Sequence record: NC_048053.1
Length of the DNA stretch: 64,000 nt
Reading direction: 5' to 3' (one strand)
The notes under the pieces were generated by a model. It was given only the letters and a program-made list of their open reading frames with translations. It was not told where the DNA came from and made no database searches. Shown here piece after piece: positions 7,675-25,167 of this stretch. A program made the position numbers and the translations under genes. Within the stretch, counting starts at the first letter, position 1. Each line of letters begins with the position of its first letter.

Positions 7675-7685
7675 AAAAGAGTCTC

Positions 7686-7715
7686 CTAAAAAGGCCACCA
7701 AATGAGGCGGCCTTT
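7686..7715 (-). terminator. intrinsic terminator
   Basis: AAAGGCCGCC-TCATTT-GGTGGCCTTT-TT. Confidence 0.75.
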
Positions 7716-7719
7716 AGGT

Positions 7720-10700
7720 TTAAGAATATCTGACCGTCAGAACAGCAGTGCCAAAAGCACGTTCATTACTTCGATACAAATACAGAGTTTCAGTTACGTT
7801 GTCATAAACTTTTTGCATAGTGAGCGTGCCAGTTTTTCCATCGTCGCCAGTTACAGGCCAACGAGCGCCATCCATTGCTTTCCATCCGGCATTGATTTGA
7901 CCCTGCGAGTCAGACGCGCTACCGAATTTTGCACTCCCATAACGAGCAGGACACATAAAATATCCGTACTCATTTGTGCGTGGAGAAAATACAAATGTAC
8001 CGCCAACATTACTACGCAAACGCGATTGAAGGTTTGCTTCCACAACTGCAAGAGTGGTTAAACCAAATGGCGCAGTTCCGTAATAAGGGTAACTACTATG
8101 CGCGTTAATATAATGCGTTTGAACCAATCGAACTTTATTTTCAATGTATGTGCATCGGATACCAAAACGCACATCACTAAGAAGAGGATCAATTGAGACA
8201 TTACCGCGCTGATCTACGCTAACCCCCTGAACGGAAACAGTGTCGCCTCGATCATTGGTTACTTGCCACAAAGCATTTGCAGAAACATCTTCGCGGTTGA
8301 AAGTACCTGAGCGTCCAAGCAACGCCTTCAACTGAATTATACTTTCATCGCGAACGTTACTGAAACCAGTGATTGTGAGATCTTGCGGATAGCCGACTTT
8401 CAAACAAGTAATGTCTACGTCACGTTCTATTACCGTGCGTTGTTCGCGCAAAGTGCAACGAACAGTTACCGTCTGAATATCATCTGCCGCTGCAAACTGG
8501 AAGAAGCCTTGCTGATCAATCGTGAAGCCCGGAGAAGAATTGATAATCGACCACGTAAAACTAACCGTGTCAGCATCAGGAGAAATACTAGTGCCAACTT
8601 GATCGTTGCGTCGTTTATATTCCATAGACAGACGATATTTGTTGTTCGGAATAACGTTTCCGCCAACGTCTTTAATCTCTGCCTCGATAATGGACTGCGT
8701 GCTCATCAGTGTGATAACACGGCTCGCACTTATCGTTTCATCCTGAATCGTTTCCGGATTTATTTTCACGAACTCACAATTTATTCTGATCTTGCCGTCA
8801 GAAATTTGATTGCCGCCGATATACAAATGCCCCGACGGACTATCAATAGAGACGGCCTCAACATCAGTATCATCACCGATTTGCCAAGTTCCTTCGCTAC
8901 CGATAATCTCACTGCCTGTATTAAGTTGAACACGATAGCCATACGGAATAAACCAACGGCCTTTTTCATATTCATACGTTGGATTTCGTTCCGCTAATTC
9001 CCAAACTATATCCTGACCAGTGATACCCATCGAAAGCAAATAAGTATTCGCTCGCGTAATGTAGACGAGTAAGAATCTTTCGATACTGTACCCATCACAC
9101 TGGTAACGAGCACGGATTTTTACAGCAGTGTCAGAGTTAATTGTTGGCGTTAAGTTTCCTTCGTCGTCAATAACAGCGACAGGCGAGTTACTCGGAATCA
9201 AAGTGCGCTGATTGTTCGTAATATCCAACGTGTAGTGATCCGTGATAAACCAATCACACGTCATTTCAGCATCATAGGTAGATTTAGGAATATTTCCATA
9301 ACTACCATCCATGTTTTTGACGATGCCGGGAAGTTCGAACGTACACACTAACGCATAAGATTCACCCTGAACATCAGCACGAATATTTGTCGCACCATCA
9401 ATACGAGCGCTGATAATCGTGTTAATGCTTTCACGATCTGGAATGCGCAGTTGAACAGTGAGAGAAGATTCGATGCGATAGAAGCGAGCTTTGATGTTAG
9501 CGTAGCTATCAAACGTAAGTTTATTTACTTGAACAATAGCGCCATCAAAAGACGTTTCGCTAAGTTCTTTCAAGGAACCAATATTCAACAACATCGGCAA
9601 CTTACTTGCTTCCATATTCTTAAATTCTGCGAAAGATTTTGGAGTACGCCCTTCGAGAATTTCAACAACTGCCATGCCTGTATATGTGCTAGGATTGAAT
9701 TTAATTAACTCGTAATCAACTTCATCTTGCTCAGGCCAACTCGCAGACCAATTCGCAGCCTGAACATATTCTTGTGAACCGTCTTCATACGTCGCAAATA
9801 AACGTGCGAACGTGCGAGAATTTTCAAAAAGAATATCGTAGCATTCAATTTCAACACTACTGACCAAACTACGCACCGGAACTAAAACAATATCCCGAAT
9901 GTTTGTGATCGTGGAGTTGTCATACGTGTATTCCATTTTGATTCGAGCGGTGCCGTGTAAATCGCCTTTGAAATAAAGCTGTTTGATTTTACCGCCTGCG
10001 CCGACAAATGGATCATACATATTCTGCGTGCTGTCACTAACAGTCAACGTAACCCAACGAGAATATTCCGGATTGTTCGGATCGAATTTCGTCGGGTCTT
10101 GTCCGTTTTTAATTGCCTCTTCCTGCAAAGCAACAGTACGCGCATACGCCTCTGTTTTCGCACTCGGAGACGGAATAAACTCAGCAGTAACTTTTGCCAG
10201 TGCTGCAACAGTCTTTCCAGTGTTCCACGTACAGGCAACAGGAAGATTTAACGTGCTGCCGGAGTTCAATTTGCCAGAGGAAAGCAGATCCAAAATACGA
10301 GGCACATAAATGGTGCTGTAGATATCAAAAAGTTTCTGGAAGGTTTTTACTGTGCTTCCTTCAATGATGCCTGCATTCAGCGAAAATGTTTCGTACCCAT
10401 CAGAAATAATAGGTGCCTGAAACTTCCCGGTTTGTTTATTCAAGTCCGGAATATTGCGAACGCCTGCATTCAAATCGGCGGTAGTTGACCACTGCGCATC
10501 TACCTCAAGTTCAGCCACGATGATAGAAGGATCTCGATCATCGATTTGTTTTTGCGTTGCACTGTCCAGAACGTACAGAGCAATCGCTTTTGGCTGCACA
10601 ATATCTCGTTCTTGCACAACACTAGGCAGAACGATTTTCAGATCCGCCAGTTTTGTTTTTGGAGCAACGAACTTGATTGATTTTGTTGTGCTTACTGTAG

Positions 10701-12243
10701 TTTCATTTTCAGTGTACTGCGCGACAAGGCTAGTGAGATAATCATTTCTCAAAACTTTGCTGCGCAGATAGTTTTCTACAACCTGCGTATGCTCAGAAGT
10801 GGAAAGATATTGCGGCTCAATTACCCGACTGGAATCGTCGTTATACGTCACGATTGTGCGCAACTCAATCTGTTCGCCTTGATTGATTGTGTCGCTTACT
10901 GAAATTGAAATAGAAGCAGGCACAAGTTCCATTTCGCTTTTCTTCACAACGAATTCTTTCGTCGCATAGTAATCAAAAATTCCCTGATAACGAGCTTTCA
11001 GCGCAATCTTTGTATCTGCGGCAACATAAGGCAACACAAGAAAAGAACCGTTGAAACTTCCCAAAGGAGTTTCAAGAATAACGTTACCGCTCGCAGTGAG
11101 ATCGCGACGCTGACCATTAGCATATGTGCCGTAGACTTGAATCTGCGTGCTACTGTTTCCGTAGAGAGTTTTCTCTACCAGTTCAATTGAAACTGGATCA
11201 GGCTCAATACCTAACGGGAATAAGCGCACGCTGATTTCATGTTCAGTCTCGCCGTACACAACAGTAAGTTGAATTGTACGAATAGCAGCAGGCTCTTTGA
11301 ACGTAACTTTATTTCCGTTACGGCTCTCGATCATTTCGTGATCTTTCACATAAACTTCTTCGGTAGTTACGCTGTTATCACTGTACAGCACATTAACACC
11401 GAAAGAAATTTCTTCACCGCCGTGAATAAAATCGGGCTGAATGAATTGAAGTTCACTGACCAGAGGTTTGCCTACATAACTACGGCGAACAGGCTCAACA
11501 ACACTATGCGCACCAATATAAATTTCAGCAGCGATATTTAGTGTCGTATACACGCCATGCAAAACTTCTTCGATTGGTGCCCACTGATAAAACAGTTGAG
11601 CACAACGACGAAAGAACATTACATTGCGTGCCGCTTTTTGGTAAGGATCGATGTTAACAGGATCAAAACCGATATGATTCAAATGCCACTCTTCGGCTTG
11701 CGCCTGCGTCATCCCAACAGCAACGAGCGCAGTAACGATATCGTTTTTGCTGTCACGGTCGATAGTTAAATCCAGACCACTGTTAATCAGATGTGCATCA
11801 ACTTCTAAATCAACGTGCGTTGTTTTATACCAAGTGCCGCCATCTTTAATCATGGTGCCTAGCGGAGTCGGAACGAAACTTTGATAGTCATTGGTATAAA
11901 GACGATAGCTTTCAAAATTCGCACCAAGCAGAATGGCAACGAACTTGTGCCAGTTTTTTGTTCCACTTACTTCGCTGTACTCAGGAAGAACATCAAAAAT
12001 CTTTTTGAAAACTTCGCTGCGGAAACTCATGATATCGCGAGTTACGTTGATACCGATTTCCTGAACACTTTCTTCAAGCACTTCCGTTGTGCTTTTAGTT
12101 GTGATGCGGCGAATGTCTATCAGTTGTTGAATAACATCGAGATTTCGCTCGTCGTTATGTTCAGCAATGATATCGAACAGTTCACCTATTGCAGCGTTGT
12201 CTTGAAAGAAGTCCAGAAAGAAATCTGGAGTTTGTGACTTCAT
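7720..12243 (-). CDS. large baseplate wedge-associated protein with Ig-like repeats
   Basis: 1507 aa directly after the wedge gene; repeated beta-sandwich units; C-terminal YPYYG...YGYFMCPARYG...MDGA domain. Confidence 0.7.
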   Translation of the reverse strand: MKSQTPDFFLDFFQDNAAIGELFDIIAEHNDERNLDVIQQLIDIRRITTKSTTEVLEESVQEIGINVTRDIMSFRSEVFKKIFDVLPEYSEVSGTKNWHKFVAILLGANFESYRLYTNDYQSFVPTPLGTMIKDGGTWYKTTHVDLEVDAHLINSGLDLTIDRDSKNDIVTALVAVGMTQAQAEEWHLNHIGFDPVNIDPYQKAARNVMFFRRCAQLFYQWAPIEEVLHGVYTTLNIAAEIYIGAHSVVEPVRRSYVGKPLVSELQFIQPDFIHGGEEISFGVNVLYSDNSVTTEEVYVKDHEMIESRNGNKVTFKEPAAIRTIQLTVVYGETEHEISVRLFPLGIEPDPVSIELVEKTLYGNSSTQIQVYGTYANGQRRDLTASGNVILETPLGSFNGSFLVLPYVAADTKIALKARYQGIFDYYATKEFVVKKSEMELVPASISISVSDTINQGEQIELRTIVTYNDDSSRVIEPQYLSTSEHTQVVENYLRSKVLRNDYLTSLVAQYTENETTVSTTKSIKFVAPKTKLADLKIVLPSVVQERDIVQPKAIALYVLDSATQKQIDDRDPSIIVAELEVDAQWSTTADLNAGVRNIPDLNKQTGKFQAPIISDGYETFSLNAGIIEGSTVKTFQKLFDIYSTIYVPRILDLLSSGKLNSGSTLNLPVACTWNTGKTVAALAKVTAEFIPSPSAKTEAYARTVALQEEAIKNGQDPTKFDPNNPEYSRWVTLTVSDSTQNMYDPFVGAGGKIKQLYFKGDLHGTARIKMEYTYDNSTITNIRDIVLVPVRSLVSSVEIECYDILFENSRTFARLFATYEDGSQEYVQAANWSASWPEQDEVDYELIKFNPSTYTGMAVVEILEGRTPKSFAEFKNMEASKLPMLLNIGSLKELSETSFDGAIVQVNKLTFDSYANIKARFYRIESSLTVQLRIPDRESINTIISARIDGATNIRADVQGESYALVCTFELPGIVKNMDGSYGNIPKSTYDAEMTCDWFITDHYTLDITNNQRTLIPSNSPVAVIDDEGNLTPTINSDTAVKIRARYQCDGYSIERFLLVYITRANTYLLSMGITGQDIVWELAERNPTYEYEKGRWFIPYGYRVQLNTGSEIIGSEGTWQIGDDTDVEAVSIDSPSGHLYIGGNQISDGKIRINCEFVKINPETIQDETISASRVITLMSTQSIIEAEIKDVGGNVIPNNKYRLSMEYKRRNDQVGTSISPDADTVSFTWSIINSSPGFTIDQQGFFQFAAADDIQTVTVRCTLREQRTVIERDVDITCLKVGYPQDLTITGFSNVRDESIIQLKALLGRSGTFNREDVSANALWQVTNDRGDTVSVQGVSVDQRGNVSIDPLLSDVRFGIRCTYIENKVRLVQTHYINAHSSYPYYGTAPFGLTTLAVVEANLQSRLRSNVGGTFVFSPRTNEYGYFMCPARYGSAKFGSASDSQGQINAGWKAMDGARWPVTGDDGKTGTLTMQKVYDNVTETLYLYRSNERAFGTAVLTVRYS

Positions 12244-13703
12244 GACATATTCCTTTCGCTGTATGTCACATTGATTTGTAGATTACGCAATGCAACATAT
12301 TCGAGTTTGCTGTTTGGAATCAGATCCTGAATCGGACTAAGTACGTTCAGATAATCAACTTCCGGACGCTTAACAGGTTCATCAGGATCGGTGTGATCGT
12401 ATTTCACTGCGTCGATGATATCGGAGACTGCCAAGCGTTTTCCGAGAGAACCGGATTTACGCTCGAACAGCTTCATAACAGCAGTAGCGATCTTATCCTG
12501 ATTTGATTGACGAGTGCCGCTTGCGTCTGCAAACAATGCAACATCAATAATAACATCGGCAGCAAGTTTATCCGGATTCCACGTTTGAATTTCAAGTTCG
12601 GATTTATATTTATCTTCAATCCAACTTAAAAATTTATTCCACTGCGCACTAACAGGACTAGGGTTGATGCCGCCCCAACTGCTAGTGTTCTTTGGCAAAA
12701 TACAAACGCGAATAACGCCCATCCATTCTTTATCGTTCGGCGCAATATCACGCTGCGACATTATTACAACGTCAGCAACATCCGGATATAGACTGATTGC
12801 AGCTTTCCATTCATCGTGACGAATAAGTTTTCCTTTCGCACGACCGAGAACAGGCGCAAAACGTCTGTAGTATTCAGCAGAAGTTTCATCAGCAGCGCCA
12901 GCAATTGACGTTGTTGTTTTGCCTTGCAGAACACTGTAGTTAACTGCCTGAACTTTTAGACCAACCGTGTCACTATTTACCGTAGCGCCAAGTGAACGAG
13001 TAGCAGCGACGTTAAAAGTATAACCAACAGGAGGAATGCTTCCCCATCGTTCGCCGCCAAATTGAATCGTAACGTCGCCATCATCTTTTGTAATGTCGAT
13101 AAAAATGTTCTGATTCTCATAGGCTTCAAACAAACATTTGTCGAAACGATCATAAACAATCTTCTGTCCGGTAGGAGTTTCCAACCAAACTTCAATATCG
13201 TTTGTGATTTCAAAGTTATCAGTGTTCAAATCGAAACTCAAATAATCGCCCGTTTGAGTAATCAGTTGAGTGTATTTAAAACGGGAACCAACGATCAGAT
13301 CAACTGTTTTAGTTTCACCTGCTTCCCACTGCGTTACTTCTGCAAGTAAGCCGGAAAGACTACCAATGCTGATCGGTTCATATTTATCCAGAATGATTTT
13401 AGTTCGCCCGGTGTTAGTTATCTGAGCACTAACAGAACCAGCAGATTTGCGCGTAATGTCTACGCCAAGAAAACGAGCGCCTGCATAAATACTTGTTGTA
13501 CGGCGAGCAAGACGGATAAATGCTTCTCGCGCTGCAATTAAAGTTGCGGTACTGTTTGTAATACCCAAATCACCTAACGCATCAGCAAGCAAACTAGTCA
13601 TACTACTGACTTGTTGATCAGTCCAATAAGTAGATTGCTGGAGTCTACTCAAAATGTCTTGAGCAAACTCTTCATGCGTAGTGAAAGTATTGAGAATTGT
13701 CAT
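12240..13703 (-). CDS. baseplate wedge protein (T4 gp6 / J-like)
   Basis: SIAGAADETSAEYYRRFAP...LIRHDEWKAAISLYPDVADV...IRVCILP pattern; follows a gp25-like gene. Confidence 0.85.
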   Translation of the reverse strand: MTILNTFTTHEEFAQDILSRLQQSTYWTDQQVSSMTSLLADALGDLGITNSTATLIAAREAFIRLARRTTSIYAGARFLGVDITRKSAGSVSAQITNTGRTKIILDKYEPISIGSLSGLLAEVTQWEAGETKTVDLIVGSRFKYTQLITQTGDYLSFDLNTDNFEITNDIEVWLETPTGQKIVYDRFDKCLFEAYENQNIFIDITKDDGDVTIQFGGERWGSIPPVGYTFNVAATRSLGATVNSDTVGLKVQAVNYSVLQGKTTTSIAGAADETSAEYYRRFAPVLGRAKGKLIRHDEWKAAISLYPDVADVVIMSQRDIAPNDKEWMGVIRVCILPKNTSSWGGINPSPVSAQWNKFLSWIEDKYKSELEIQTWNPDKLAADVIIDVALFADASGTRQSNQDKIATAVMKLFERKSGSLGKRLAVSDIIDAVKYDHTDPDEPVKRPEVDYLNVLSPIQDLIPNSKLEYVALRNLQINVTYSERNMS

Positions 13704-14113
13704 AGCGGCCTCAATGCAAATGTGACGGAATCCTTATCTTCCAGCGCAGGAACTCTCCATGCAATATAGCATTCGTAAGTTTGCTGTTCAGAGCGGAAAA
13801 CTTTCACATAAATATTTGTGATATCGTTAGTCAATCCGTTATCCGGATCTTCGAGCGCAGTTTTAATATGCGTTTGAATCCATCCGGCTGTTTCATCGTC
13901 GAACGGTTCGAATAAATCTTTATAGACAAGGGAACCAAATTTCTCCCGCCATTTACGCGAACCTTTTCGCGTACCGATAACGAATAAAACTTTTTGCGTG
14001 ATGCTGTCCATATCCTGAACTGTATCACGCAATTCCATTTTGATATCCATGTTGATATCAGAATAGATTGCTTCGTTAGCAGGAACGTTAACACGCTTTG
14101 TAATTATGCCCAT
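13700..14113 (-). CDS. baseplate wedge gp25-like protein
   Basis: YSDINMD...SITQKVLFVIGTRKGSRKWREKFGS matches the gp25/GPW motif. Confidence 0.85.
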   Translation of the reverse strand: MGIITKRVNVPANEAIYSDINMDIKMELRDTVQDMDSITQKVLFVIGTRKGSRKWREKFGSLVYKDLFEPFDDETAGWIQTHIKTALEDPDNGLTNDITNIYVKVFRSEQQTYECYIAWRVPALEDKDSVTFALRPL

Positions 14114-14403
14114 TAGCCAAACCCTACGTTACCTGAACCGTTGCTTGCCGTATCGCCGCAAGTATTTCCGTCTCCCGCACGCTGCGCAGGTTTTCCATTT
14201 ACGAAAACAGTTGCGCCGCTAGTAGCGTATCCGGTATGTGGCGGTTTCTTTGGCTTCCAGTGAGGTTGATAAGGATCGCCATTACGAACAACGCCCAAAC
14301 CATTCACAAAAACATTTCCGGAAGCACCAACAGGAACAACAGGAAAATACCCACTGTGACCAGTAGTTTGATCAGCACCCAATCGAATAACAGGTTTTCC
14401 CAT
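14113..14403 (-). CDS. PAAR-repeat spike tip protein
   Basis: PVIRLGAD..TGH...NVFVNG..VVRNGD...H...VFVNGKPAQRAGD..TCG. Confidence 0.92.
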   Translation of the reverse strand: MGKPVIRLGADQTTGHSGYFPVVPVGASGNVFVNGLGVVRNGDPYQPHWKPKKPPHTGYATSGATVFVNGKPAQRAGDGNTCGDTASNGSGNVGFG

Positions 14404-14429
14404 TAGATTTTCTCCTTTTGTTACTGGTT

Positions 14430-14436
14430 AAATTAG
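14430..14436 (-). promoter_or_regulatory. candidate late promoter core CTAATTT
   Basis: 27 nt upstream of the PAAR start, just past a terminator. Confidence 0.45.
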
Positions 14437-14440
14437 TGGC

Positions 14441-14477
14441 AGAAACAAAAACGGGCAGCACAAAGGCCACCCGTTTT
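14441..14477 (-). terminator. intrinsic terminator closing the non-coding tract
   Basis: AAAACGGGTGGC-CTTTGT-GCTGCCCGTTTT-TGTTT. Confidence 0.85.
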
Positions 14478-14927
14478 CGTATCAAATTTTTCATGCGGAT
14501 TTAAAAGTTTGACTCGCAGCCTATAGAATAACGGCGCGGCAATCGGTATATAGCTTGGGCAAATAAAAGCAGTTGTTCGCCGTGTTGCATCCGACAGAAT
14601 CGCCGCGCCATTTGGAGGCGGCACAAAACCCCACGTCTGAAATTTTGTTTGTCTGAATAAGCGGAGTTACCCGCAATTTACCGCAATCAAATTTAAATTT
14701 TTCGGCAAGTGTTGTCGCTGTCTAACACATCCCCATAATGTGCGCTTTGCCGTACACCACGGCGTAGCCAGACGCGAGACGTTTCGGTGTTCTCGCACAC
14801 ATTTCTATAATGCCTGATCTTACCCCTTGCCAAAGCAAGATCAGTAGCGACATAAGGAGGATGAGATCTTTCACTCTGAATGTTTCCTTATATCGAGTTC
14901 TTCAAATACATTTTACAGTATTAAATC
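14478..14927 (-). ncRNA. candidate structured ncRNA (about 450 nt)
   Basis: no credible ORF; stems 14531-14543/14599-14611, 14737-14803 (multibranch), 14814-14844 and 14848-14895; stem mismatches resolve as G-U pairs on the minus strand. Confidence 0.5.
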
Positions 14928-14954
14928 TTAACCACCGTAGAACCAATCATTCAT
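14928..14954 (-). CDS. possible 8-aa mini-ORF MNDWFYGG
   Basis: AGGAG RBS 8 nt upstream; ATG overlaps the preceding TGA. Confidence 0.3.
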   Translation of the reverse strand: MNDWFYGG

Positions 14955-15055
14955 TTTGCTTCTCCTGTTCCGCAATCAATTATCCACGCACGTAATTCTT
15001 CGCGAGACATTTTTGCAGGCGGTGTGAATGTTTCAGATTTAAGAGCTTTATCCAT
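14951..15055 (-). CDS. small phage protein (MDKALKSETFTPPAKMSREELRAWII...)
   Basis: 34-aa ORF below the track cutoff; resembles small phage proteins with an 'F.I.RM..AL.S......lSREE.R.fi' pattern (from memory). Confidence 0.55.
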   Translation of the reverse strand: MDKALKSETFTPPAKMSREELRAWIIDCGTGEAK

Positions 15056-15094
15056 CCGGTTAATATCAAAAATAACAACCGGATCTACAAGCGC

Positions 15095-15406
15095 TCATTT
15101 TTCAGATGCACGCATCATGCAGTCTTGCGCTTCAAGCAGTTTACGCAAACCAGCACTTTTTTCTGCGCTATCCGGAATCTCGTTATCTAGCGTTTCCGCA
15201 ATATGTCGAAAACATCCAGCAATTCCCATCTTCGTGAAATCGCCTGCGAAGCGTTCCTGATCAAAGTAGTTCATGATCGGATTAGAATATTCTTTCTTCG
15301 CGCCGCCCCAATCACCAACTTCTTTCGGGCCAGGCATTCCGGTCGGGCCAGCATTTGTTCCCGGAGAATTTTTCTTTTCGGTTATATCAATACGTCTTTC
15401 CGACAT
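15095..15406 (-). CDS. small helical-hairpin protein, possibly Acb2/Tad1-like nucleotide sponge
   Basis: GAGGA RBS; C-terminal LDNEIPDSAEKSAGLRKLLEAQDCMMRA motif of a widespread phage family. Confidence 0.6.
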   Translation of the reverse strand: MSERRIDITEKKNSPGTNAGPTGMPGPKEVGDWGGAKKEYSNPIMNYFDQERFAGDFTKMGIAGCFRHIAETLDNEIPDSAEKSAGLRKLLEAQDCMMRASEK

Positions 15407-15420
15407 TTTTTGTTCCTCTT

Positions 15421-16400
15421 AGGTAACATCCTGCATTACGCTGTTAAGGGCAACGCAATGCAAGTTGTCTTCCCAACTCTCCAGACAAAAAGATTTTCTA
15501 TTCGTTTCCCGTCTCCCCACTGAAACAGGTCTAAACGAAATCTATCTTCGAAGCCTCGCAGGAGGTCTTGCAATACGCGATGGACGGCGTAGGCAAAATA
15601 CGATCTTCGGTCTGCGGCAGTTATTTGAAATCATCGTAAGATGACAAGATAGTGTCGTAAAACCGCTACCCACACTTTAAACTTCCTGCTAAATAAGATT
15701 CGAATACGGAAGCACCGCACGGGATATTCGAAAATAAGTCCTCTTTGATTGGCAACAGCTTTTATGGTACAGCGCAATGCACACTCAAACTTCGAATGTG
15801 CATTAAGCAGTGCGAAGATTTTGTTTCCCGGTTCCCCATTGAAGCAGGTCTAAACAAAAATCTTGGTATGGCCTAGCCGGAAGCCTGAAACATCAGCAAG
15901 AATGCTCAGTAAAGAACTATCCACACCTGCGGAGGTTAAGACACTTAATCGCGAATGAAAAACTTAATGTGGAATGCTTTCGCGCACCGCTTGTCAACAA
16001 GCCACATGGATATGTCAAACGTTGCCATTACACGCTCAGACGTGTGCGAGATACCGCTCCACCGGATCTCAGTATATTCACTTTACAGTTTTAAAATAAA
16101 TATACGGAAAACGTTGGCAAAAGATTTCCCGTTTATGTCCTCGTTAGAAAACATAAACGGCATTCTTTCTTGCTGTCTGCGATAAATCGTTTTTTCTCTG
16201 TCTGGAAGAGAAAAGGCGATTTCGTTTCCCCCTGTTAGGAGCGGCTTGGTAGCCTACAAGTGAAACGGCTGCCAGTGTTATATCCCCACTTTACAGATTC
16301 GTTCTCCCGCAAAAGAACTTTTATGAATCCAACTGGCTAGGGTCTACAGACAAGGCGGGGAAAAAGTAAAACCGCCTTGCCTCAACTAATTACTATTTAC
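15421..16400 (-). ncRNA. candidate large structured ncRNA (about 950 nt)
   Basis: about 1 kb with no credible ORF in an otherwise gene-dense window; more than 12 hairpins, multibranch junctions and a duplicated 33-nt module. Confidence 0.55.
15504..15855. repeat. two 33-nt imperfect direct repeats (15504-15536 and 15823-15855)
   Basis: GTTTCCCGTCTCCCCACTGAAACAGGTCTAAAC vs GTTTCCCGGTTCCCCATTGAAGCAGGTCTAAAC, 29/33 identical. Confidence 0.9.
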
Positions 16401-16409
16401 AGATTTGCT

Positions 16410-18188
16410 TTAGAAAATTTTGCGCTTAACTTGTGAATAGTAAACTTCAAAAGGAGCGCCATATAAAGCAGGGCCACGTTGCGCACGCGCCGTAACTTTA
16501 CCTGTATGAAGATGCACTTCGGTGATTTCTACCGTAGGCTGTTTCGGGCGAATAGTTTCGTAGATAGGTGCATTCAACGTAGGATAATCCTCGTAGAATT
16601 TAGCGAAACTTTCTTGCTGTTCTTTGGTAGCAGGAGGCAGAGTTAAACGCAATTCAGCGGCTTTCTTACCACGCGCCAAACGAACAGCACCTTTTTTCAA
16701 AGGTACGCCTTGATACATCAGATAAGAAGTAATGCGGCGAGCAATACCCAATACCTGATCATAAACAACGTCATTCATTTCTGGCGCACTAAAACGAATT
16801 CCGGTTGTTGGTTGTGGATGAGCCAGACGAACGCCAGTGCTGAAATAACCTTCTTCAATCAGGCGGCGCAAGAAGTCATAGGTTTTTGCAACGGTGCCGT
16901 CATAGATCGGAAATTCAATTTTTGGCGCATCAGCTTTAGGTTCAACAAAAGTTGGAAGCTGAACAGGCGCAGCCATTTTAACAGTCTGCGAAACTTTATA
17001 AGTGTTCTCCAGAATAGGAGTTGTTTTGATTACAACTTTATTCTTAATTGCTTTCTTATAGTTTTCGTCAGTGGTGAGTGAAGTAAATAGGCGATAGTCA
17101 ACCGGACTCGTATAGCCGCCGATAATATCGCGCACCTGCGTTTGCAGTTTTGCCTGCGTGTCAGCAAAAATTACGCGACTACGGTTAGGCGTACTCGGAG
17201 AAACCGGGAAGAACGCGCCGTAAACAGTTTTGATGTTGCGCGGCGATCCTGTTCCCGTAACCTTAGTTGCATTTTCCAGTTTCGGAAGTTTTTCAGCCTG
17301 ACCGACAGGCGCAACTTTCGGCGTACTGCGAATCGCTTTACCTTTAATATAACTGGTGCCTTCCGGATCAACAGTCAGATTACTCAGCAGAGTTTTCACT
17401 GCTTGAGAATCCATCCAACTTTCAATAGGAACAGCGAGATTGTGCGCGAGATAATGTTTCTTACGGCGCAGCAGAACAACAGTGCCTTTCGGAATAAGAG
17501 GCGAGAGAAGTTTTTTCTTCGCAGTTCCGACATAAGCAAACGAGTCGTTCTTCAAATCTGAAATTTGACCAAACGGTGCGGTAAATTCCAGAGCGCCCAT
17601 GATGTTCTGCGCAGTTTCATGGCCGCGAACAATAAACTGAATTCGAGGACTATCTTTCAAACGAAGATCATAACGGTCTTTGTTGAGATAGGTAATCTTG
17701 ATCAGATCGCCTTTCTCAAGTTCCAGATCATATTCGTCCGAAGCATCATCTACCGCCATTTTCTTGCCAGTATATTTGAGATACTTAGGCGCGGCAGATT
17801 CAGAGCTAACATCCAGCACATCGAAAACACGTTGAGAGTTTTCAGCATACTCACGCGCAGCAAGCATAGCGGTAGCGAGATTGTAGCTAATGGATTTTTC
17901 TTTCGGTGGAACTAACTGAACATGAACACTGCTACTTGCGCTCATGAAAACAGTTTGATTATCGTCGCGAGTTCCGGCGAAGTGCATTCCAGTAAGACGC
18001 TCTACCGCGTCAGCACTAATGCTTTCGTGTGCGATACGATCACCGGGAACAATTTCAGTGATCTCCCCACGGTGCCAGACATATGCGGCGCGTCCGTTAT
18101 GACCAATAAAATGATCACCTACTTTAGAAATTGACCGTGGGATAATTCCCAAGTCAGAGATAACGCGAGAAGGTTTTTGAACAATCAT
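16410..18188 (-). CDS. putative internal head protein
   Basis: 592 aa; several N-terminal S-x-S motifs; two copies of the shared Y(K/R)YxG domain. Confidence 0.65.
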   Translation of the reverse strand: MIVQKPSRVISDLGIIPRSISKVGDHFIGHNGRAAYVWHRGEITEIVPGDRIAHESISADAVERLTGMHFAGTRDDNQTVFMSASSSVHVQLVPPKEKSISYNLATAMLAAREYAENSQRVFDVLDVSSESAAPKYLKYTGKKMAVDDASDEYDLELEKGDLIKITYLNKDRYDLRLKDSPRIQFIVRGHETAQNIMGALEFTAPFGQISDLKNDSFAYVGTAKKKLLSPLIPKGTVVLLRRKKHYLAHNLAVPIESWMDSQAVKTLLSNLTVDPEGTSYIKGKAIRSTPKVAPVGQAEKLPKLENATKVTGTGSPRNIKTVYGAFFPVSPSTPNRSRVIFADTQAKLQTQVRDIIGGYTSPVDYRLFTSLTTDENYKKAIKNKVVIKTTPILENTYKVSQTVKMAAPVQLPTFVEPKADAPKIEFPIYDGTVAKTYDFLRRLIEEGYFSTGVRLAHPQPTTGIRFSAPEMNDVVYDQVLGIARRITSYLMYQGVPLKKGAVRLARGKKAAELRLTLPPATKEQQESFAKFYEDYPTLNAPIYETIRPKQPTVEITEVHLHTGKVTARAQRGPALYGAPFEVYYSQVKRKIF

Positions 18189-18197
18189 GACCTGTCC

Positions 18198-18638
18198 TTA
18201 TATCGAAATTTTTCGCATTGAGTGTTGCTGGAGAAGTCGAAGATTTCCAAACATCACATTATATGCAGAGGTTCCATACGTGTGGATGAGTTCGCGAGGA
18301 ACAAACGTGCCGAAATAAAGACAGTTAGGATCGAGTTGAGTGATTTCCATTCCAACGTTTTTATCAATGTTGGAAACCACCCACACCCACGGTTCCGCAA
18401 AGAAACGATCATTGCGAACATGGATACGATAACCAATTGCCATTTCTCGACCGCTAGGATCAAACGAAAACAGATCAACAGTTTTCTTATTCATTGCTTT
18501 CTGTACGGTGAACAATGCCATCGTGCGAAACTTTTCAGAAAACTGCGGAAGGTGCGCGTTGTCCTGTTCTATTTGCAGCAAGATTTTGTCTTGCTGTTCC
18601 TGCGTCATCTTTCCAAAATATTTTATTGCGAAAGGCAT
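18198..18638 (-). CDS. hypothetical protein
   Basis: 146-aa ORF coupled to the upstream kinase gene. Confidence 0.75.
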   Translation of the reverse strand: MPFAIKYFGKMTQEQQDKILLQIEQDNAHLPQFSEKFRTMALFTVQKAMNKKTVDLFSFDPSGREMAIGYRIHVRNDRFFAEPWVWVVSNIDKNVGMEITQLDPNCLYFGTFVPRELIHTYGTSAYNVMFGNLRLLQQHSMRKISI

Positions 18639-19216
18639 TTCAGAATCTCCCCGACAATTTCGGTAGGAGTTGTATTATCGGTACTGAATACTGCATCATA
18701 GCCGCCCGGAAGATTCCGATAACGGTCTTGATACATTTCGAAAGTTTCGGCATCGACCATACGCGCTTCAATATTGTCGCTACCTTCGCGCTTATCGCCA
18801 CGACGAGAAACATAAGTGTCGTATGTGCAAGTAAGCAGGATGCTAACTACTTGAACATCCGGACGCAGAATATTAACAGTGCGATCAAACAGCACTTGCG
18901 TCTTATCGTCTTTGACTTGCAGCGCCCACGTTGAAGGCCAGCCACGATCAGAAATAACTACATCGGCAGAGGACTCCGCAAGATAATCCATCAAAGAAGA
19001 TCGTGCGGCGAGAAACAGAAGCATTTCAGTTGTCGGCGAGCGCACATTATTATCATGCAGCGCGATGTTGCGAAGCTGTTCCGCAAGTGGAGTTGTTCCC
19101 GGCTCTCGAACACGGATAACACTCATATCGCGCAAACGCAGAGACGATTCTAAAATTTCTGCGGTAGTGGATTTTCCCACACCTTCTGTTCCTTCAAGGA
19201 GGATGTATTTTTTCAT
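18623..19216 (-). CDS. tmk: thymidylate (dTMP) kinase
   Basis: P-loop EGTEGVGKST; VREPGTT; LLFLAAR; VISDR; start reassigned to MKKYILL. Confidence 0.93.
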   Translation of the reverse strand: MKKYILLEGTEGVGKSTTAEILESSLRLRDMSVIRVREPGTTPLAEQLRNIALHDNNVRSPTTEMLLFLAARSSLMDYLAESSADVVISDRGWPSTWALQVKDDKTQVLFDRTVNILRPDVQVVSILLTCTYDTYVSRRGDKREGSDNIEARMVDAETFEMYQDRYRNLPGGYDAVFSTDNTTPTEIVGEILKCLSQ

Positions 19217-19220
19217 TTGA

Positions 19221-19709
19221 TTACCTAAACTTGCCTCCACGCCATGCAGCATGGATTAGAAGACGGGAAAGGATTTTGTTTGATGTTTCGTGTGCTGTAG
19301 CATTCTTTTTAACTCGCGCATTACCTAAAGAAGTTACAACAATAACCCCCGCTCCGCTGCCTTTAATGCGAGCAAGAATTTTCTCTCCGTGAGATTCAAA
19401 CAAACGTTCAGAAATAACGAAATAAAACTTGTGGCAGTATTCAAAGTATTTGTGCCATTTCTTATCAGAAGAGAAATCAGCCCAACTACTTTTGACCTCA
19501 GAGATTACTACATGACATTTTGTGTTGAGTGACCAAACATCTGCACGTAGATTGCCGTATTTGTTCAAACCAAATTCAATGTGATTAGAATATCTCTTAT
19601 CGATCCAGTAACCCACAACTGCTTCCGTTAAAAAGGCAGTTGTCTCGCCACGCGACAAACTTGTGAAAACAACTGCGGGTTTCCGGATTTTAATTCTTCT
19701 ACGACGCAC
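19221..19709 (-). CDS. mmcB: MmcB-family PD-(D/E)XK nuclease-like protein
   Basis: RADVWSL...ISEVKSSWADFSSDKKWHKYFEYCHKFYF is the MmcB/DUF1052 signature. Confidence 0.85.
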   Translation of the reverse strand: MRRRRIKIRKPAVVFTSLSRGETTAFLTEAVVGYWIDKRYSNHIEFGLNKYGNLRADVWSLNTKCHVVISEVKSSWADFSSDKKWHKYFEYCHKFYFVISERLFESHGEKILARIKGSGAGVIVVTSLGNARVKKNATAHETSNKILSRLLIHAAWRGGKFR

Positions 19710-20151
19710 CTAATTCCAACTTCTTGATTGCCTGTTTCAGAACAGGTTTCCAATCGCGATCAATCTTTTTAAGCGCATCTTCGGCAGAGAACCAACGACG
19801 TTCGCGTTGATGTACTTCCAGATAGTTATCAAGTTCTTCATGCACCTGCATCAAAAACCATGTTACTTTCTGGAGGCGTCCGGTACTGCCTTTAACGTAT
19901 TCCATTTTAGCAATTTTCTTGCCGGGAACACCGCGCAGACCTGCCTCTTCCATTGCCTCTTTTATCGCGCTCGCTTCCAACGAAAGATCCGGTTCCTTAC
20001 CGCCTTTTGGTAATCCCCAATTGTTCGCGTGCTTTGTGCGAATCATGCAGATTTCCAAATCACCTTCATCGTTGTAGCGATACGGAATAACGCCGCTTTG
20101 TTTGCGAGGCTTGCGCCCGTCGCCTTCATCCAACGTGAGAATAACTTTCAT
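19699..20151 (-). CDS. Nudix hydrolase
   Basis: WGLPKGGKEPDLSLEASAIKEAMEEAG Nudix box; N-terminal SGVIPYR. Confidence 0.92.
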   Translation of the reverse strand: MKVILTLDEGDGRKPRKQSGVIPYRYNDEGDLEICMIRTKHANNWGLPKGGKEPDLSLEASAIKEAMEEAGLRGVPGKKIAKMEYVKGSTGRLQKVTWFLMQVHEELDNYLEVHQRERRWFSAEDALKKIDRDWKPVLKQAIKKLELGAS

Positions 20152-20654
20152 AAATAATCATTCGCTCTCGGTTTCGGTTCATCCCAATTCCACGCACGGT
20201 CTACCCAAAAACCTGCTTTGGAAAGCGCGTCAACTGCACTACGAAGAGTCGAACTTCCGACAACCACATATTCTACAATTGCGTCGCCAACATTATAACC
20301 ATACTTGTAGTTACCCAAGCAATAGGCGAAAGACGATTGTTTTGGATCGAAAAGAACTTCTCCTGACTGACTCACGACGATTGCGCTGCACGGCGCACCT
20401 TCCGGAACAGTAGAAAGAATTTCAATACGAGCGTGAGGATTGCGACGATAACAACGTTGAACGAATTGAGCACAATCAGCAAAGGAACGTGCAATAATTG
20501 CAGCGCGACTATCGTTATATTGATGTGCGTCTTCAATGATATTGCGAGCACCAGTGAGATTAAAACCAGCAGCAGCGATCATAATAGCCAACGAAGACGG
20601 TTCAATCTGCGCGGCAAAAGTGTTTGAACCAAACACTTCCGGAAACGTTTTCAT
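20148..20654 (-). CDS. hypothetical protein
   Basis: start reassigned to MKTFPEV with GGGAG RBS. Confidence 0.75.
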   Translation of the reverse strand: MKTFPEVFGSNTFAAQIEPSSLAIMIAAAGFNLTGARNIIEDAHQYNDSRAAIIARSFADCAQFVQRCYRRNPHARIEILSTVPEGAPCSAIVVSQSGEVLFDPKQSSFAYCLGNYKYGYNVGDAIVEYVVVGSSTLRSAVDALSKAGFWVDRAWNWDEPKPRANDYL

Positions 20655-20680
20655 AAATATCTCCCAATGAATTGTCTTAC

Positions 20681-20965
20681 TCAAATTAGCGAGTTTGGAC
20701 AACTCAGTATTTGCATACGCGACGAGGTACGCAGAATACCGCCAATCTGCACGCCGTATTTTGTGGGATGTTTTTCACGCGTCCAGTTCACATTAACTTT
20801 CGCAAACTGTCTGATTGCACGATTGGCGAATTTTCCACGCAGAATAAGCAAATGGCTTCCATGAGGAAGCCCCAACTTGCGCGTAGAATCGCATACGAGT
20901 TTAAAGATGTTTCTGGCGTGAATCTCAGTAACTTCTTCCTCGCAAAAAATTCTAATCTTTAGCAA
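20681..20965 (-). CDS. hypothetical protein (probable TTG start)
   Basis: fills the gap between neighbours; GGGGA 8 nt before TTG at 20965. Confidence 0.45.
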   Translation of the reverse strand: MLKIRIFCEEEVTEIHARNIFKLVCDSTRKLGLPHGSHLLILRGKFANRAIRQFAKVNVNWTREKHPTKYGVQIGGILRTSSRMQILSCPNSLI

Positions 20966-21578
20966 AGCCGATTTCCCCGGAATGATCGGATAACACGAAC
21001 ATGTTTTCGCAAAGATATTCGTTAGGAACATCGGCGCTCGGAATAGAGTCATCAAAAAGATGAGTGACAATATCCGAACTATTGAAATGCTGAATATCGC
21101 TAACGCGCCCGATCAAAATGGATTTTCCAGCCAGCGCCTGTTTATCTGTGTAAAGCACCGATGAATTAAAGGTGCCAGCACCGATCCAAAGAACAGAGGC
21201 GACGTGTGGAAGATTTTCTTCAAGCGCCAGTGTAGGCACGCTCTCTAAAATTTCCAAATCAACATTCTCAGTTTTGAAAAATTCTTCAAGACTGCAAAGA
21301 ATGCACGAACGATTTTCCGGACGGCGGTGACGCTTCAAACGCACGAAAGGTTTGTTGCATTTCACCGAAAGTTGATCGGTTATATACTGACCGTTTTCGA
21401 TATCAACGTCTTCCGATTCCAAAGCATAGACCGAAGCGAGAACGCTTTGCTGAATACCAGCCCAACGATTGTGCAATTCACGATCATCAGTGCCACGCAA
21501 AGTTACATCGGTGCGCAACACGCGCAGAATTCCGTCAGCGATAAAAGTGACTAAAAGTTTTTTGCGGAGAAAGTACAT
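20952..21578 (-). CDS. hypothetical protein
   Basis: 208-aa ORF with AGGA RBS, co-oriented. Confidence 0.75.
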   Translation of the reverse strand: MYFLRKKLLVTFIADGILRVLRTDVTLRGTDDRELHNRWAGIQQSVLASVYALESEDVDIENGQYITDQLSVKCNKPFVRLKRHRRPENRSCILCSLEEFFKTENVDLEILESVPTLALEENLPHVASVLWIGAGTFNSSVLYTDKQALAGKSILIGRVSDIQHFNSSDIVTHLFDDSIPSADVPNEYLCENMFVLSDHSGEIGFAKD

Positions 21579-21587
21579 AGTGTTTCC

Positions 21588-22376
21588 TTAGTTCAGATCG
21601 ATTCGTGAAGCATTGACTTTATAATTACCGCCAGCCTTATGCGTAACAGTTCCGGTAACGTTCAACTCGTCACTGCCTTTAATGATTGTTTTGCGGTTGC
21701 CTAGAACCTCAACTGTCTGATTACCTTTTATGAGAGTGTACTGATTACCAGCAGAGCCTTTTGCAGCGCCTTTAAATGCTACACGTTTCTTCTGATCAGA
21801 CTGCAATGAGCGAGCAATCAACACCGGATCTTCTGAAATATATTTCGGAATATCCGATTTGGAATCGGTTACAGTTAGTTGTTGGTTTCCGATAATCGTT
21901 TGGTTAACGTCGCCAAAAATAACGAAATGGAAATCGCCGCCATGAATCAGAATACATTCTTTCGTCATGCGATCTACAATCATTTGCGTTGCGCTACTCA
22001 AACGATGAACCATACGATGAGGATAATTCACCAGCGCTTCTGGAAGCATATCGGCCTCAGTGGGTCGAGCCTCCATTGTGTATTCACCAGTGTACATATC
22101 CCCTGTAGGGAACTTTACAGAAATTTTCGAGTTACGTTGCGGTACGTTAAAAGTTCCGAACGCATGAACATCAGATCCGCCTTTCCATCCTTCGACTTGT
22201 CGCATTTTAGGACGCAGCCACGGCAAATCTTTATCTTCGATGCTATCGAAAATTCCTACGATGCGAGCACGAACTTGACCAATTCGTTTTGGATCGTTCG
22301 TGTCCACAACAACCGCTTCATAATCCATGTTTGGGTCAATGCCCTTTTTCTGGACGTGACCGTTTAAATTCATCAT
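21588..22376 (-). CDS. baseplate central spike (T4 gp5-like OB-fold plus beta-helix, no lysozyme domain)
   Basis: YEAVVVDTNDPKRIGQVRARIVGIFD...LPW...VPQRNSKISVKF; C-terminal GNQTVEVLGNRKTIIKG repeats. Confidence 0.9.
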   Translation of the reverse strand: MMNLNGHVQKKGIDPNMDYEAVVVDTNDPKRIGQVRARIVGIFDSIEDKDLPWLRPKMRQVEGWKGGSDVHAFGTFNVPQRNSKISVKFPTGDMYTGEYTMEARPTEADMLPEALVNYPHRMVHRLSSATQMIVDRMTKECILIHGGDFHFVIFGDVNQTIIGNQQLTVTDSKSDIPKYISEDPVLIARSLQSDQKKRVAFKGAAKGSAGNQYTLIKGNQTVEVLGNRKTIIKGSDELNVTGTVTHKAGGNYKVNASRIDLN

Positions 22377-24256: not shown

Positions 24257-24259
24257 AAG

Positions 24260-24481
24260 TTACTCCTGAGCAAATGCGCCAGATTTAAAACGAACAGCAA
24301 TGTTTTTCATTCCTAACGCTTCGAGACGACTATTAACGCACAAAGGGCAGAGCGATCCCTGTTCAAGACCGTCTGCCTCTGGCGTCGCTTCTCGAAGTAG
24401 TTGCCACGCGGTTTCAGAAATAACAAATTCAGGATATGAATTCGCATTACACCACGCACAAAAATTCAGAGAAACTTTCAT
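24260..24481 (-). CDS. small CxxC...CxxC protein
   Basis: CAWC and CPLC motifs; GAGGT RBS. Confidence 0.7.
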   Translation of the reverse strand: MKVSLNFCAWCNANSYPEFVISETAWQLLREATPEADGLEQGSLCPLCVNSRLEALGMKNIAVRFKSGAFAQE

Positions 24482-24487
24482 GTAACC

Positions 24488-24874: not shown

Positions 24875-25167
24875 TAGATTGTTGTCCTTGAAACTTTCCG
24901 CACTGGTTGTTTCGGACGCTGAATCGGAATACGAATCAACATACCAGCAACCATTTCGCTTGGATGAAAAAGACCGTTGGCGATCAGGATGTGCCGCCAG
25001 TAAGCATTAGTGCCAAACTGTTTATGAGAAACCATTTGCGGGTTTCCTGCTAACGAGGCATCTATCCTGATATTTACAGTATTTGCACTTTCAATTTCAT
25101 CAAACAAAGTGACAAGGAGAGGATCAATTCCAAACTTATCTACGGGTGTTGATTGCCACTGAGCCAT
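24874..25167 (-). CDS. baseplate wedge gp53 / LysM-like protein
   Basis: PQMVSHKQFGTNAYWRHILIANGLFHPSEMVAGMLIRIP; start reassigned to MAQWQ. Confidence 0.8.
   Translation of the reverse strand: MAQWQSTPVDKFGIDPLLVTLFDEIESANTVNIRIDASLAGNPQMVSHKQFGTNAYWRHILIANGLFHPSEMVAGMLIRIPIQRPKQPVRKVSRTTI

Follow-up and report, generated by a model that had tools for sequence, protein, structure and literature searches.

A modular structured RNA ahead of variable small genes in Dickeya phage vB_DsoM_JA29 and related jumbo phages

To our knowledge, phages have yielded only a handful of large structured RNAs, and the function of none of them is understood. GOLLD and ROOL are reported to be phage-borne large RNAs that form RNA-only assemblies (PMC12286853). 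At a much smaller scale, the prophage anti-small-RNAs AgvB and AsxR measure 51-60 nt, lie 3' of PR' and have intrinsic terminator ends with poly-U (PMC4104026; 2026 preprint). Here, a tract of about 1 kb in Dickeya phage vB_DsoM_JA29 (Salmondvirus, 253 kb) is examined within a 64-kb window of DNA, the whole stretch analysed, which corresponds to positions 62001-126000 of MH460461.1; the 1.2 kb around the tract is 100% identical to the JA29 record, in which each position equals the window position plus 62000. Window positions are used throughout, and all features of the RNA described below lie on the minus strand. A first-pass annotation, made from the letters alone, had proposed that the tract encodes a large ornate structured RNA on that strand, and this is supported by synteny, selection, compensatory changes and an excess of G-U over A-C combinations. 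The RNA is about 0.97 kb long, runs on the strand of all neighbouring genes and consists of three tandem paralogous domains; across five jumbo-phage genera (Erwinia/Dickeya) and a Yersinia phage that is unclassified, it keeps its position, and several of its helices are conserved with compensatory changes. It exceeds 400 nt, has many covariation-supported helices and has no coding potential, features expected of a large ornate non-coding RNA.

Comparison with the described RNAs shows both common ground and clear differences. The JA29 RNA resembles GOLLD and ROOL in its size class (several hundred to about 1000 nt), in its many conserved helices and junctions, in being phage-borne and in having come to light via a gene-free gap and covariation. 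It differs in the lack of neighbouring tRNA genes, in tandem domains of variable number and in its fusion to a downstream ribosome-binding site (RBS). ARAGORN detected no tRNA or tmRNA in the window, so that the tRNA adjacency of GOLLD and ROOL has no counterpart here. The covariance models of GOLLD, ROOL, OLE, raiA and HEARO, all of them Rfam families, gave no match. The likeness to GOLLD and ROOL drawn in the first-pass annotation therefore holds as one of analogues and fails as one of relatives, since the Rfam models do not match. With Rfam 15 (4227 families), the window gave no match at gathering score, 14300-16600 gave nothing credible at E <=10, and 13 related loci gave nothing save one tRNA elsewhere; the suspicion that the class was missing from the catalogues was thus borne out for JA29 and the 13 relatives. 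The publications on these phages make no mention of the gap, and no description of such a structured RNA in jumbo phages was found.

The gap itself (15407-16409, 1003 nt) is the longest stretch of the window without a minus-strand open reading frame (ORF) of at least 80 aa, as had been claimed, and by that measure the coordinates first assigned to it were exact. It lies between JA29_107 (592 aa, 16410-18188, minus strand), a KMPT-N domain protein gene upstream, and the small ORF JA29_106 (103 aa, 15095-15406, minus strand) downstream. The runner-up (14404-15094, 691 nt) adjoins the same neighbourhood, and all other ORF-free stretches measure at most 231 nt. Phages JA13, JA11 and JA33 share the gap, which is some 270 nt shorter in them. 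Between JA29 and JA11 the aligned gap is 89% identical (87-98% per 100 nt). Third codon positions are less alike, at 62-76% in the four largest genes of the flanks and 82% in a small 146-aa gene; first and second codon positions of the flanking genes stand at 88-99%. Indels of 1 nt occur throughout the alignment, and no ORF is common to the two phages. The scattered 1-nt indels, together with an identity above that of third codon positions, mark the tract as non-coding but constrained, and this sequence comparison indicates purifying selection well above that on synonymous sites.

Beyond the nearest relatives, homologs of the 592-aa protein at 40-46% identity are found in 51 further phage records, from Erwinia phages, Dickeya phage AD1 and one Yersinia phage. 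Every relative has an ORF-poor gap of 0.65-1.4 kb between this gene and the PAAR/baseplate genes. These relatives represent Salmondvirus, Alexandravirus, Sasquatchvirus, Yoloswagvirus and Rivsvirus, in addition to the unclassified Yersinia phage, and in Yoloswag, Alexandra, AD1, Y3, pEa_SNUABM_3/35/25/5/30 and pEp_SNUABM_52 the gap measures 0.7-1.4 kb. Blastn between genera returns short blocks only; comparison of the syntenic regions for covariation, a check that the first-pass annotation had suggested, identified several helices with many compensatory changes.

The architecture of the RNA is repetitive. In JA29 the domains fall roughly at 16340-16120, 15990-15776 and 15731-15422, and each begins with a head made of helix P1 (GCNNNN/NNNNGC), an inner helix P2 and a purine-rich junction, UAAA(N)GUG...AAC, followed by GCAG. 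Hairpins succeed the head: the first has an AGA bulge and an AGUGGG loop, the next a GGRAAGAC loop, and a long terminal one closes the series. The head pattern, written as (U/A)A-GC-NNNN, P2, UAAA(N)GUG...AAC, NNNN-GC-AG, occurs three times per RNA in most relatives; across 21 heads, pair 3 of P1 takes all four Watson-Crick types. A P2 stem of at least 6 bp is present in 63% of heads compared with 20% of shuffles, which is modest support. An nhmmer profile of domain 3 recovers JA29 domain 2 at E 1.7e-9. Model R1, built from jumbo-phage heads only, finds a single copy per genome (E 1e-11 to 1e-17) and misses the second and third heads, whose sequences are too divergent, so that the claim of repeated domains rests on the pattern and stem analysis and on nhmmer. 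A MAFFT alignment of the M2/M3 heads was misaligned, too poor to yield a third model. The roughly 270 nt missing in JA11 coincide almost exactly with domain 2, and because a metagenomic relative (L010) keeps this region, domain 2 was lost in the JA11 lineage. One whole domain is thus missing from JA11, JA13 and JA33, and an extra one is apparently present in L010; these RNAs range from 2 to 4 domain copies, and all occurrences of the unit together from 1 to 4. The RNA is modular rather than a single globular fold.

Covariation is seen in alignments of individual elements. The block around AGACC, a motif whose recurrence had been noted at the outset and which has five copies on the minus strand, is a 25-nt motif (AGACCUNNNUNARNNGGGANNCGGG) with variable complementary arms. 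The 17 distinct copies in alignment A4 fold into a lower stem, then an AGA bulge, then an upper stem of 8 bp and a hexaloop. In this alignment 85% of cells are paired and 66 are double-change cells, against 27.5 +/- 4 in shuffles (0/500); sliding the alignment as a control lowers pairing to 39-59%. All 10 pairs of the lower stem show compensatory changes, one of them being UA in 8 copies, GC in 7, CG in 1 and UG in 1. In the same helices G-U or U-G occurs 46 times and A-C or C-A 9 times, an excess that points to an RNA of the minus strand and away from DNA or the other strand. The counts over the supported helices (46:9, 5:0 and 72:9, or about 5:1 to 8:1) all lean the same way. Alignment A3, of domain 1 heads from 13 phages, has 87.7% of cells paired and 21 double-change cells against 6.2 in shuffles (0/500), with pair 3 of P1 as CG, UA or AU and pair 4 as GC or AU. 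For the 3' domain in seven phages of Alexandravirus and Sasquatchvirus, the predicted structure has compensatory changes at 30 of its 68 pairs and pairing in 94.5% of cells, and G-U stands to A-C as 72:9.

Arguments from folding of the single sequence proved far less discriminating. The minus strand of the tract folds at -317 kcal/mol (z = -7.1 against its own shuffles) and the plus strand at -278 kcal/mol (z = -3.7). Over 64 windows of equal length on the same (minus) strand, most of them coding, the mean is -299 +/- 20 kcal/mol, which leaves the tract with a GC-adjusted z of only -1.6. Its gain in stability of minus over plus, -40 kcal/mol, compares with a window-wide mean of -33 +/- 16; owing to its richness in G, the minus strand shows such a gain all along the window. 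Thermodynamic z-scores were accordingly dropped as evidence after this coding-window control. The hairpin density and the G-U pairs found only on the minus strand, both of which had been read from the one sequence, do not single the tract out, coding windows folding nearly as well; what sets it apart comes from comparison with relatives: its conservation, its covariation and, in the helices that covary, the balance of G-U to A-C. As a more general observation, minus-strand RNA throughout the window is about 33 kcal/mol per kb more stable than plus-strand RNA, a by-product of the excess of G over C on the coding strand, and such a window-wide G excess can mislead the assignment of structures to a strand from a single sequence.

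The individual elements can be followed from the 5' end. The domain 1 head (16271..16337) consists of the P1 5' strand, the P2 hairpin, the junction UGUAAAGUGGGGAUAUAAC and the P1 3' strand, with P1 as GCCAGU/ACUGGC and P2 as GGAUUC/GAAUCU. Over 13 phages P1 appears as GCCAGU/ACUGGC, GCUAGU/ACUAGC, GCCGG/CCGGC, GCUGG/CCAGC and GCAGGA/UCCUGC, and in some phages P2 is closed by a UUCG or GCAA tetraloop. The sequence CUGUAAAGUG had been considered as a promoter and was dropped, as it is the junction of the conserved two-helix head. Next comes a branched hairpin, CGUUUC...GAAACG with an inner AGGCU/AGCC hairpin (16223..16267), in which RNAalifold on five sequences finds most pairs compensatory (for example GC/AU, UA/AU/GC and UG/AU/GC), and then a hairpin AAAUCG..UUUUCUCU-UCCAGAC-AGAGAAAA..CGAUUU (16184..16222) with a conserved UYCAGAC loop; at this site the metagenomic relatives L011 and L025 have CGCUGUC..GCUC-AUUCAGAC-GGAGC..GACAGCG. 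The P4-like element AUCGCAGACAGC-AAGAAAGAA-UGCC (16159..16183) is near-invariant in JA29, JA11, L010, L011 and L025 and is found also in the lambdoid contig L017. The P5-like terminal hairpin CCGUUUAUGU...ACAUAAACGG, followed by GGGAAAUC (16123..16160), has a stem that covaries in L010, L011 and L025; it was scored as terminator-like by the scan, and the relatives are without a U-run. Alexandra and Y3 have a CUUUCAC-loop hairpin and then GGGAAG at its position. Taken as a whole, the 5' domain has 38 pairs in the RNAalifold structure of JA29, JA11 and three metagenomic relatives, and 14 of them show compensatory changes.

Domain 2 is the part that JA11, JA13 and JA33 lack, and most of the showpiece structures of the first-pass annotation fall in this one dispensable stretch of about 270 nt. 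All the stems it listed exist where it had put them: a four-way junction at 16022-16120, a three-way junction at 15968-16006, an 11-bp stem at 15776-15804, and the stems CCGTTTATGT/ACATAAACGG (16129-16160) and TTCGAATA/TATTCGAA (15700-15731). Their fates on comparison differ. Changes in relatives support TTCGAATA/TATTCGAA, CCGTTTATGT/ACATAAACGG and TTTTCTCT/AGAGAAAA alike. In the four-way junction, the arm GUAUAUU...(CUGUAAAGUG)...AAUAUAC (16072..16105) is upheld by a compensatory change in L010 (GUAUAAU/AUUAUAC) and appears in JA11 with a G-U pair (GUAUGUU), and the other arms are confined to JA29. The three-way junction (UGC-GCGAAA-GCA within UGUGG/CCACA) conflicts with the homology-supported domain 2 head, which uses the same bases. 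That head (15929..15990), with P1 GCGGUG/CUCCGC, P2 CGCGAA/UUCGCG and junction AUUAAGUGUCUUAAC, has an architecture in common with 29 other heads in 12 phages. The AGACC hairpin of the domain (15815..15864), one of the 17 copies in A4, is built as described above, its upper stem being CCUGCUUC/GAACCGGG (match to model R2, E 1.3e-12). The 11-bp stem is the P5-like terminal hairpin of domain 2 (15776..15804); it is specific to JA29, its position matches that of P5 in domain 3, and UGCAUUGCG is common to both.

Domain 3 opens with the hairpin UCGAAUAU...GUAUUCGA (15700..15731), whose loop holds the 5' strands of the domain 3 P1 (GCGGU) and of a second long-range helix (GCUUCC). The remainder of the head (15612..15686) consists of conserved blocks: GGAAGU, the junction UUUAAAGUGUGGGUAG, an inner hairpin and AAAUAAC-UGCCGC-AG. 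The hairpin, P1 and GCUUCC/GGAAGU are 100% paired in five sequences; the hairpin has one compensatory pair (AU/GC), GCUUCC/GGAAGU has one (CG/UA), and P1 (GCGGU/UGCCGC) is invariant. On this thin evidence, the hairpin loop may pair with two downstream segments as a pseudoknot or a switch. There follow the AGACC hairpin with an extended lower stem (15489..15549; R2 match, E 4.3e-13), the P4 hairpin AGUUG-GGAAGA-CAACU (15463..15478), in which GUUGGRAAGACAAC is invariant in eight phages and which has the form GAUGGAAAGACAUC in lambdoid phages, and the P5 hairpin CUUGCAUUGCGUUG-CCCUUAA-CAGCGUAAUGCAGG (15430..15464), 99% paired in eight sequences with 6 of 13 pairs compensatory. In the eight phages with this type of last domain ("type B") the order is AAUAAC-NN-CCGCAG, a variable hairpin, CCUCC, the AGACC hairpin, P4, P5, GGWUGWYACC, a Shine-Dalgarno sequence and AUG.

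Several resemblances to other kinds of RNA were considered and set aside. The pairing of AACAUCCGCAG with an upstream GCGG recalls the P/Q pairing in the P4-P6-like core of group I introns, where the Q element is AAUCCGCAGC; there is no Rfam intron match at E <=10, the flanking genes are intact and separate, and the unit stands in three tandem copies, so the resemblance was judged coincidental. A sponge for CsrA/RsmA was rejected by eye, GGA not being enriched and the GGAUG motif not being conserved, and mimicry of the 16S rRNA 3' end and loop-loop complementarity between the conserved loops, likewise checked by eye, were dropped.

Relatives of the RNA extend outside the jumbo phages. A pattern search for the AGACC hairpin covered metagenomes, viral contigs and 185,579 bacterial and archaeal genomes. 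In the metagenomes only three loci look real (L025, L075 and L102); in the 185,579 genomes there were 74 matches, about the estimated chance number, and none passes the stem and context filter. Three loci flagged by the filter (L046, L078 and L080) were rejected as false positives inside a 733-aa ORF. The pattern is otherwise limited to loci resembling this jumbo-phage clade, with one exception, the IMG/VR viral contig L017. This contig is a lambdoid immunity/replication region that encodes DnaB, a CI-like repressor and an O-like initiator. Its leftward early operon contains one full domain, placed after the CI repressor gene and a PL-like promoter and before a hairpin terminator. Within positions 5600-7300 of the contig, a terminator that looks bidirectional, GCCCAC-CGAA-GUGGGC, stands downstream of the RNA domain, and a small plus-strand ORF overlaps, in antisense, the 3' end of a 62-aa minus-strand ORF. 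A blastn search with the L017 domain against phages and E. coli genomes turned up nothing informative.

The head pattern GTGGGN{2,3}ATAACACNNGCAG matched at least 118 proviral contigs. Among the 118 matches listed, 117 have the P1 5' strand, which lies outside the pattern, and a P4-like GAUGGAAAGACAUC hairpin is present in 111; what comes after P4 is of nine different kinds among them. A second pattern, GCAGACAGC..RGAAAGA, was abandoned, its matches being mostly metagenome contigs and chance-like. As a 131-nt element, the lambdoid form has copies in at least 159 phage records, with identities of 90-100% that fall below 95% in only two of them; its carriers include P22, HK97, HK544, mEp234/235 and ST64T; one match is in a Stx2a-converting phage, with no annotated features within +/-2.5 kb. 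In P22 (BK000583.1 40180-40340; L426 1601-1760) the rha stop codon marks the start of the element, which has the lysis genes on one side and orf25...terminase gene 3 on the other. In P22, HK97, ST64T and others it is an unannotated stretch of about 130-150 nt whose hairpins are that of the head, one of the form GGAAAGAC and a terminal one; variable ORFs come directly after it. R1 matches these lambdoid elements at E 8e-7 to 2e-5, and Rfam recognises no family in the P22 and Stx-phage loci. By these sequence matches, lambdoid phages carry one-domain members of the same uncatalogued RNA family. L017 and P22 have the RNA without the 592-aa gene as a neighbour, unlike the jumbo phages, in which that gene is always upstream. 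Like AgvB and AsxR, which are counted among the "Pas" sRNAs of lambdoid moron sites, the lambdoid element is an unannotated RNA at a conserved lambdoid position beside variable cargo; by the description of their location, size and 3' end those sRNAs are distinct, the element lying between lysis and terminase genes, measuring at least 130 nt and having no terminator.

The two ends of the jumbo-phage RNA bear on what it might do. It lies within a long co-directional operon: every ORF in the non-overlapping tiling of the window is on the minus strand, as are 17 of 17 annotated coding sequences (CDSs) at record positions 69300-86500 (window 7300-24500), and more than 15 kb of co-directional late genes lie downstream of the tract. 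Directly after the stop codon of the 592-aa gene stands a promoter-like motif, AAATCTGTAAATAGTAATTA (16387..16406), the putative start of the RNA's transcription unit, and AAATCTGTAAATA(N)AATT is kept after this stop codon in all genera despite diverged flanks. In Yoloswag, SNUABM_5 and L102 a strong intrinsic terminator precedes the motif. The core CTGTAAAT, which resembles the T4 late promoter (TATAAATA), has four minus-strand copies in the 64 kb (16395-16402, 25072-25079, 46684-46691 and 50563-50570) and none on the plus strand, and is a candidate late-promoter core for this phage group; the copy at 46691 lies 30 nt ahead of an ATG at 46654. A scan for sigma-70 promoters and intrinsic terminators gave results at chance level. 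Just inside the RNA is a 5' hairpin, GGCAAGGCGG...CCGCCUUGUC (16349..16381), which in L010 has a different sequence and is a hairpin at the same position (GGUAGAGCGGAAA/UUUCCGUUCUACC). At the other end, the 3' motif GGAUGUUACC leads into the Shine-Dalgarno sequence and AUG of JA29_106 (15404..15431). In every genus GGWUGWYACC (UAUGACACA in Alexandravirus) stands 14-22 nt ahead of the start codon of a small ORF, and the RNA ends 10-25 nt before that start; the small ORFs differ between phages and belong to four unrelated families among the jumbo-phage genera. No terminator lies between the RNA and the next ORF in any genus. A possible 3' limit of the unit is a terminator-like hairpin with a U-run, GGGUGGCC-UUUGU-GCUGCCCG (14440..14472), some 35 nt upstream of the PAAR gene start. 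This hairpin, which is 98% identical between JA29 and JA11 and 87-89% identical to AD1, Y3 and Alexandra though the flanks cannot be aligned, is unusually conserved for a plain terminator.

The favoured function, to which a probability of roughly 0.55 is assigned on sequence grounds, is that of a cis-acting structured leader, or an RNA processed from one. The RNA would be transcribed from the T4-late-like motif (CTGTAAATA) at 16387-16406 and continue into JA29_106, and it would act at the RNA level on or from its own transcript. As a portable leader it would protect or process the mRNA and set up translation of whichever cargo ORF comes next; part of it may build up as stable RNA after processing, and the repeated domains would be additive copies of one functional unit rather than a single globular fold. 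This reading is favoured because the RBS junction is the sole contextual feature kept in all the jumbo-phage genera, P22 and proviral contigs read, because no terminator intervenes and because the unit is present in 1-4 copies. Tandem riboswitches and leaders (tandem aptamers, T-box) similarly place repeated structured units in a 5' leader directly upstream of an RBS; they differ in that here the downstream genes are unrelated, no known aptamer matches and no expression platform or terminator is obvious, and the tie to one gene family typical of riboswitches is absent, with four unrelated ORF families in the jumbo phages and nine different continuations in the lambdoid ones. Several points weigh against the leader and the structure proposed for it. 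The promoter, the RNA ends and any processing are read from sequence, and no known translational or stability leader comes near the size of one with three domains and 1 kb. The Yoloswag-type order of terminator, promoter motif and RNA fits a stand-alone RNA gene equally well. On the structural side, the search window for P2 is permissive, shuffled sequences reaching at least 5 bp in 46% of cases, and the pseudoknot is supported by a single substitution event per helix. Pair counts derived from RNAalifold, for the 5' domain and the Alexandravirus/Sasquatchvirus 3' domain, are biased toward structures predicted on the same alignments, the Salmondvirus-like set comprises only 3-4 independent lineages, and the lambdoid copies, at 95-100% identity, offer almost no covariation.

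The closest competitor, ranked second and not far behind the leader in likelihood, is a stand-alone large RNA acting in trans, either a multivalent scaffold or decoy or a self-assembling RNA like GOLLD and ROOL, with its adjacency to an ORF incidental. The UAAAGUG..AAC junction, with the AGUGGG and GGAAGA loops, would then make up a binding surface common to all domains, for other copies of the RNA or for a protein of the phage or the host. The size, the ornate multi-domain structure and the possible pseudoknot fit this proposal, as do the RNA's own promoter-like motif, the intrinsic terminator ahead of it in three of the loci, a copy number of 2 to 4 as expected of additive binding units and the GOLLD and ROOL precedents (PMC12286853); that the downstream ORF is not conserved further suggests an RNA untied to one gene. 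It accounts poorly for the lack of a terminator or defined 3' end between RNA and RBS in any genus, for a spacing of 14-22 nt from 3' motif to AUG that is kept through ORF replacement and for a lambdoid version of only about 150 nt in mid-operon. Processive antitermination in cis, by a nascent RNA that binds RNA polymerase and promotes read-through of terminators in the downstream operon as HK022 put and Bacillus EAR do, is again suggested by analogy and appears unlikely. The tract stands at the start of a run of co-directional late genes longer than 15 kb, the PAAR/baseplate genes are separated from the RNA by a terminator-like hairpin of conserved sequence, and put is itself a phage RNA element in an operon with a promoter upstream and terminators downstream; the full domain of L017 even sits where HK022 has putL (PMC9378689). 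Homology to put was nevertheless rejected for lack of any sequence or structure match, the R2 match in the HK022 immunity region being at chance level (E 1.1) and the head pattern giving nothing above chance there. The put element, moreover, is about 70 nt, more than 10-fold smaller than the ~1-kb tract, and the lambdoid copies are found in mid-late-operon, as in P22 and HK97, rather than after PL or PR. The late operon of P22 and HK97 is already antiterminated by a Q-type protein, and a second antiterminator looks redundant.

Two further readings would deny the tract an RNA function altogether. An element acting as DNA, whether an origin, a packaging site or terminus, or a recombination boundary for cargo exchange with incidental hairpins, is highly improbable. 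Conserved sequence beside variable cargo does have the look of a recombination boundary, and the linear record of Yersinia phage fHe-Yen9-02 (OR620964.1) begins right at the 3' edge of the region, inside a small ORF just after the RNA; as it cuts that ORF, the record start is arbitrary and no physical end. Compensatory changes keep the helices while the sequence diverges, and a DNA cruciform, like the other strand, would have mismatches at the G-U combinations, which outnumber A-C by 5:1 to 8:1. The GC skew is monotonic, with no turn, the tract's GC of 44% equals that of the rest of the genome, and it has no AT-rich block and no tandem repeats or iterons; the possibility of an origin or terminus, raised in the first-pass annotation as a way for the RNA to fail, thus finds no sign in skew, GC, iterons or record start. 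Least probable of all are decayed genes or a cluster of tiny unannotated protein genes. Some records annotate CDSs of 31-63 aa over the homologous region, and the neighbouring gap at 14404-15094 holds plausible small ORFs. Conservation far above synonymous sites, no codon periodicity, frame-breaking 1-nt indels between JA29 and JA11 and structure-preserving substitutions with no coding explanation all speak for RNA instead.

The annotation of the homologous regions is itself of some interest. In fHe-Yen9-02 (L190 1-663 and L191 3000-4000) the RNA motifs are present and are overlaid by three annotated CDSs of 31-56 aa (001c-003c); both these CDSs and the start of the record look like annotation artefacts. 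In pEa_SNUABM_35 (L111 5747-5908) a 53-aa CDS annotated on the opposite strand within the RNA region is probably spurious, and the same probably holds for the tiny CDSs annotated across the region in several phage records. The second gap of the window (14404-15094), by comparison, probably holds unannotated small genes: a 34-aa ORF at 14951-15055 (MDKALKSETF...) and a 50-aa GTG-start ORF at 14722-14874 with a hydrophobic N-terminus are both kept in JA11, and Alexandra and SNUABM_35 have a hydrophobic ORF of 47-52 aa at the equivalent place. For the genes flanking the RNA, KMPT-N is the sole domain detected in JA29_107, which has no relatives in the PDB, and JA29_106 has neither a Pfam family nor a PDB relative.

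These comparisons add to the phage repertoire an RNA of about 1 kb with clear covariation, an unusual tandem-domain build and natural copy-number variants, one that shows where phages, at a conserved "slot", insert small genes of variable kind. More tentatively, and with the odds against it, the tract may be the expanded three-domain form of an undescribed, widespread phage RNA module with an active function of its own, whose one-domain form goes unannotated in P22, HK97, ST64T and Stx-type phages. If so, the module might reprogramme RNA polymerase or ribosomes for the cargo gene that follows, or might self-assemble or sequester a protein late in infection, and it would stand for a functional class new to phage RNAs, not for a passive leader. 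The presence of a minimal relative in the genetically tractable phages P22 and HK97 makes its function directly testable.

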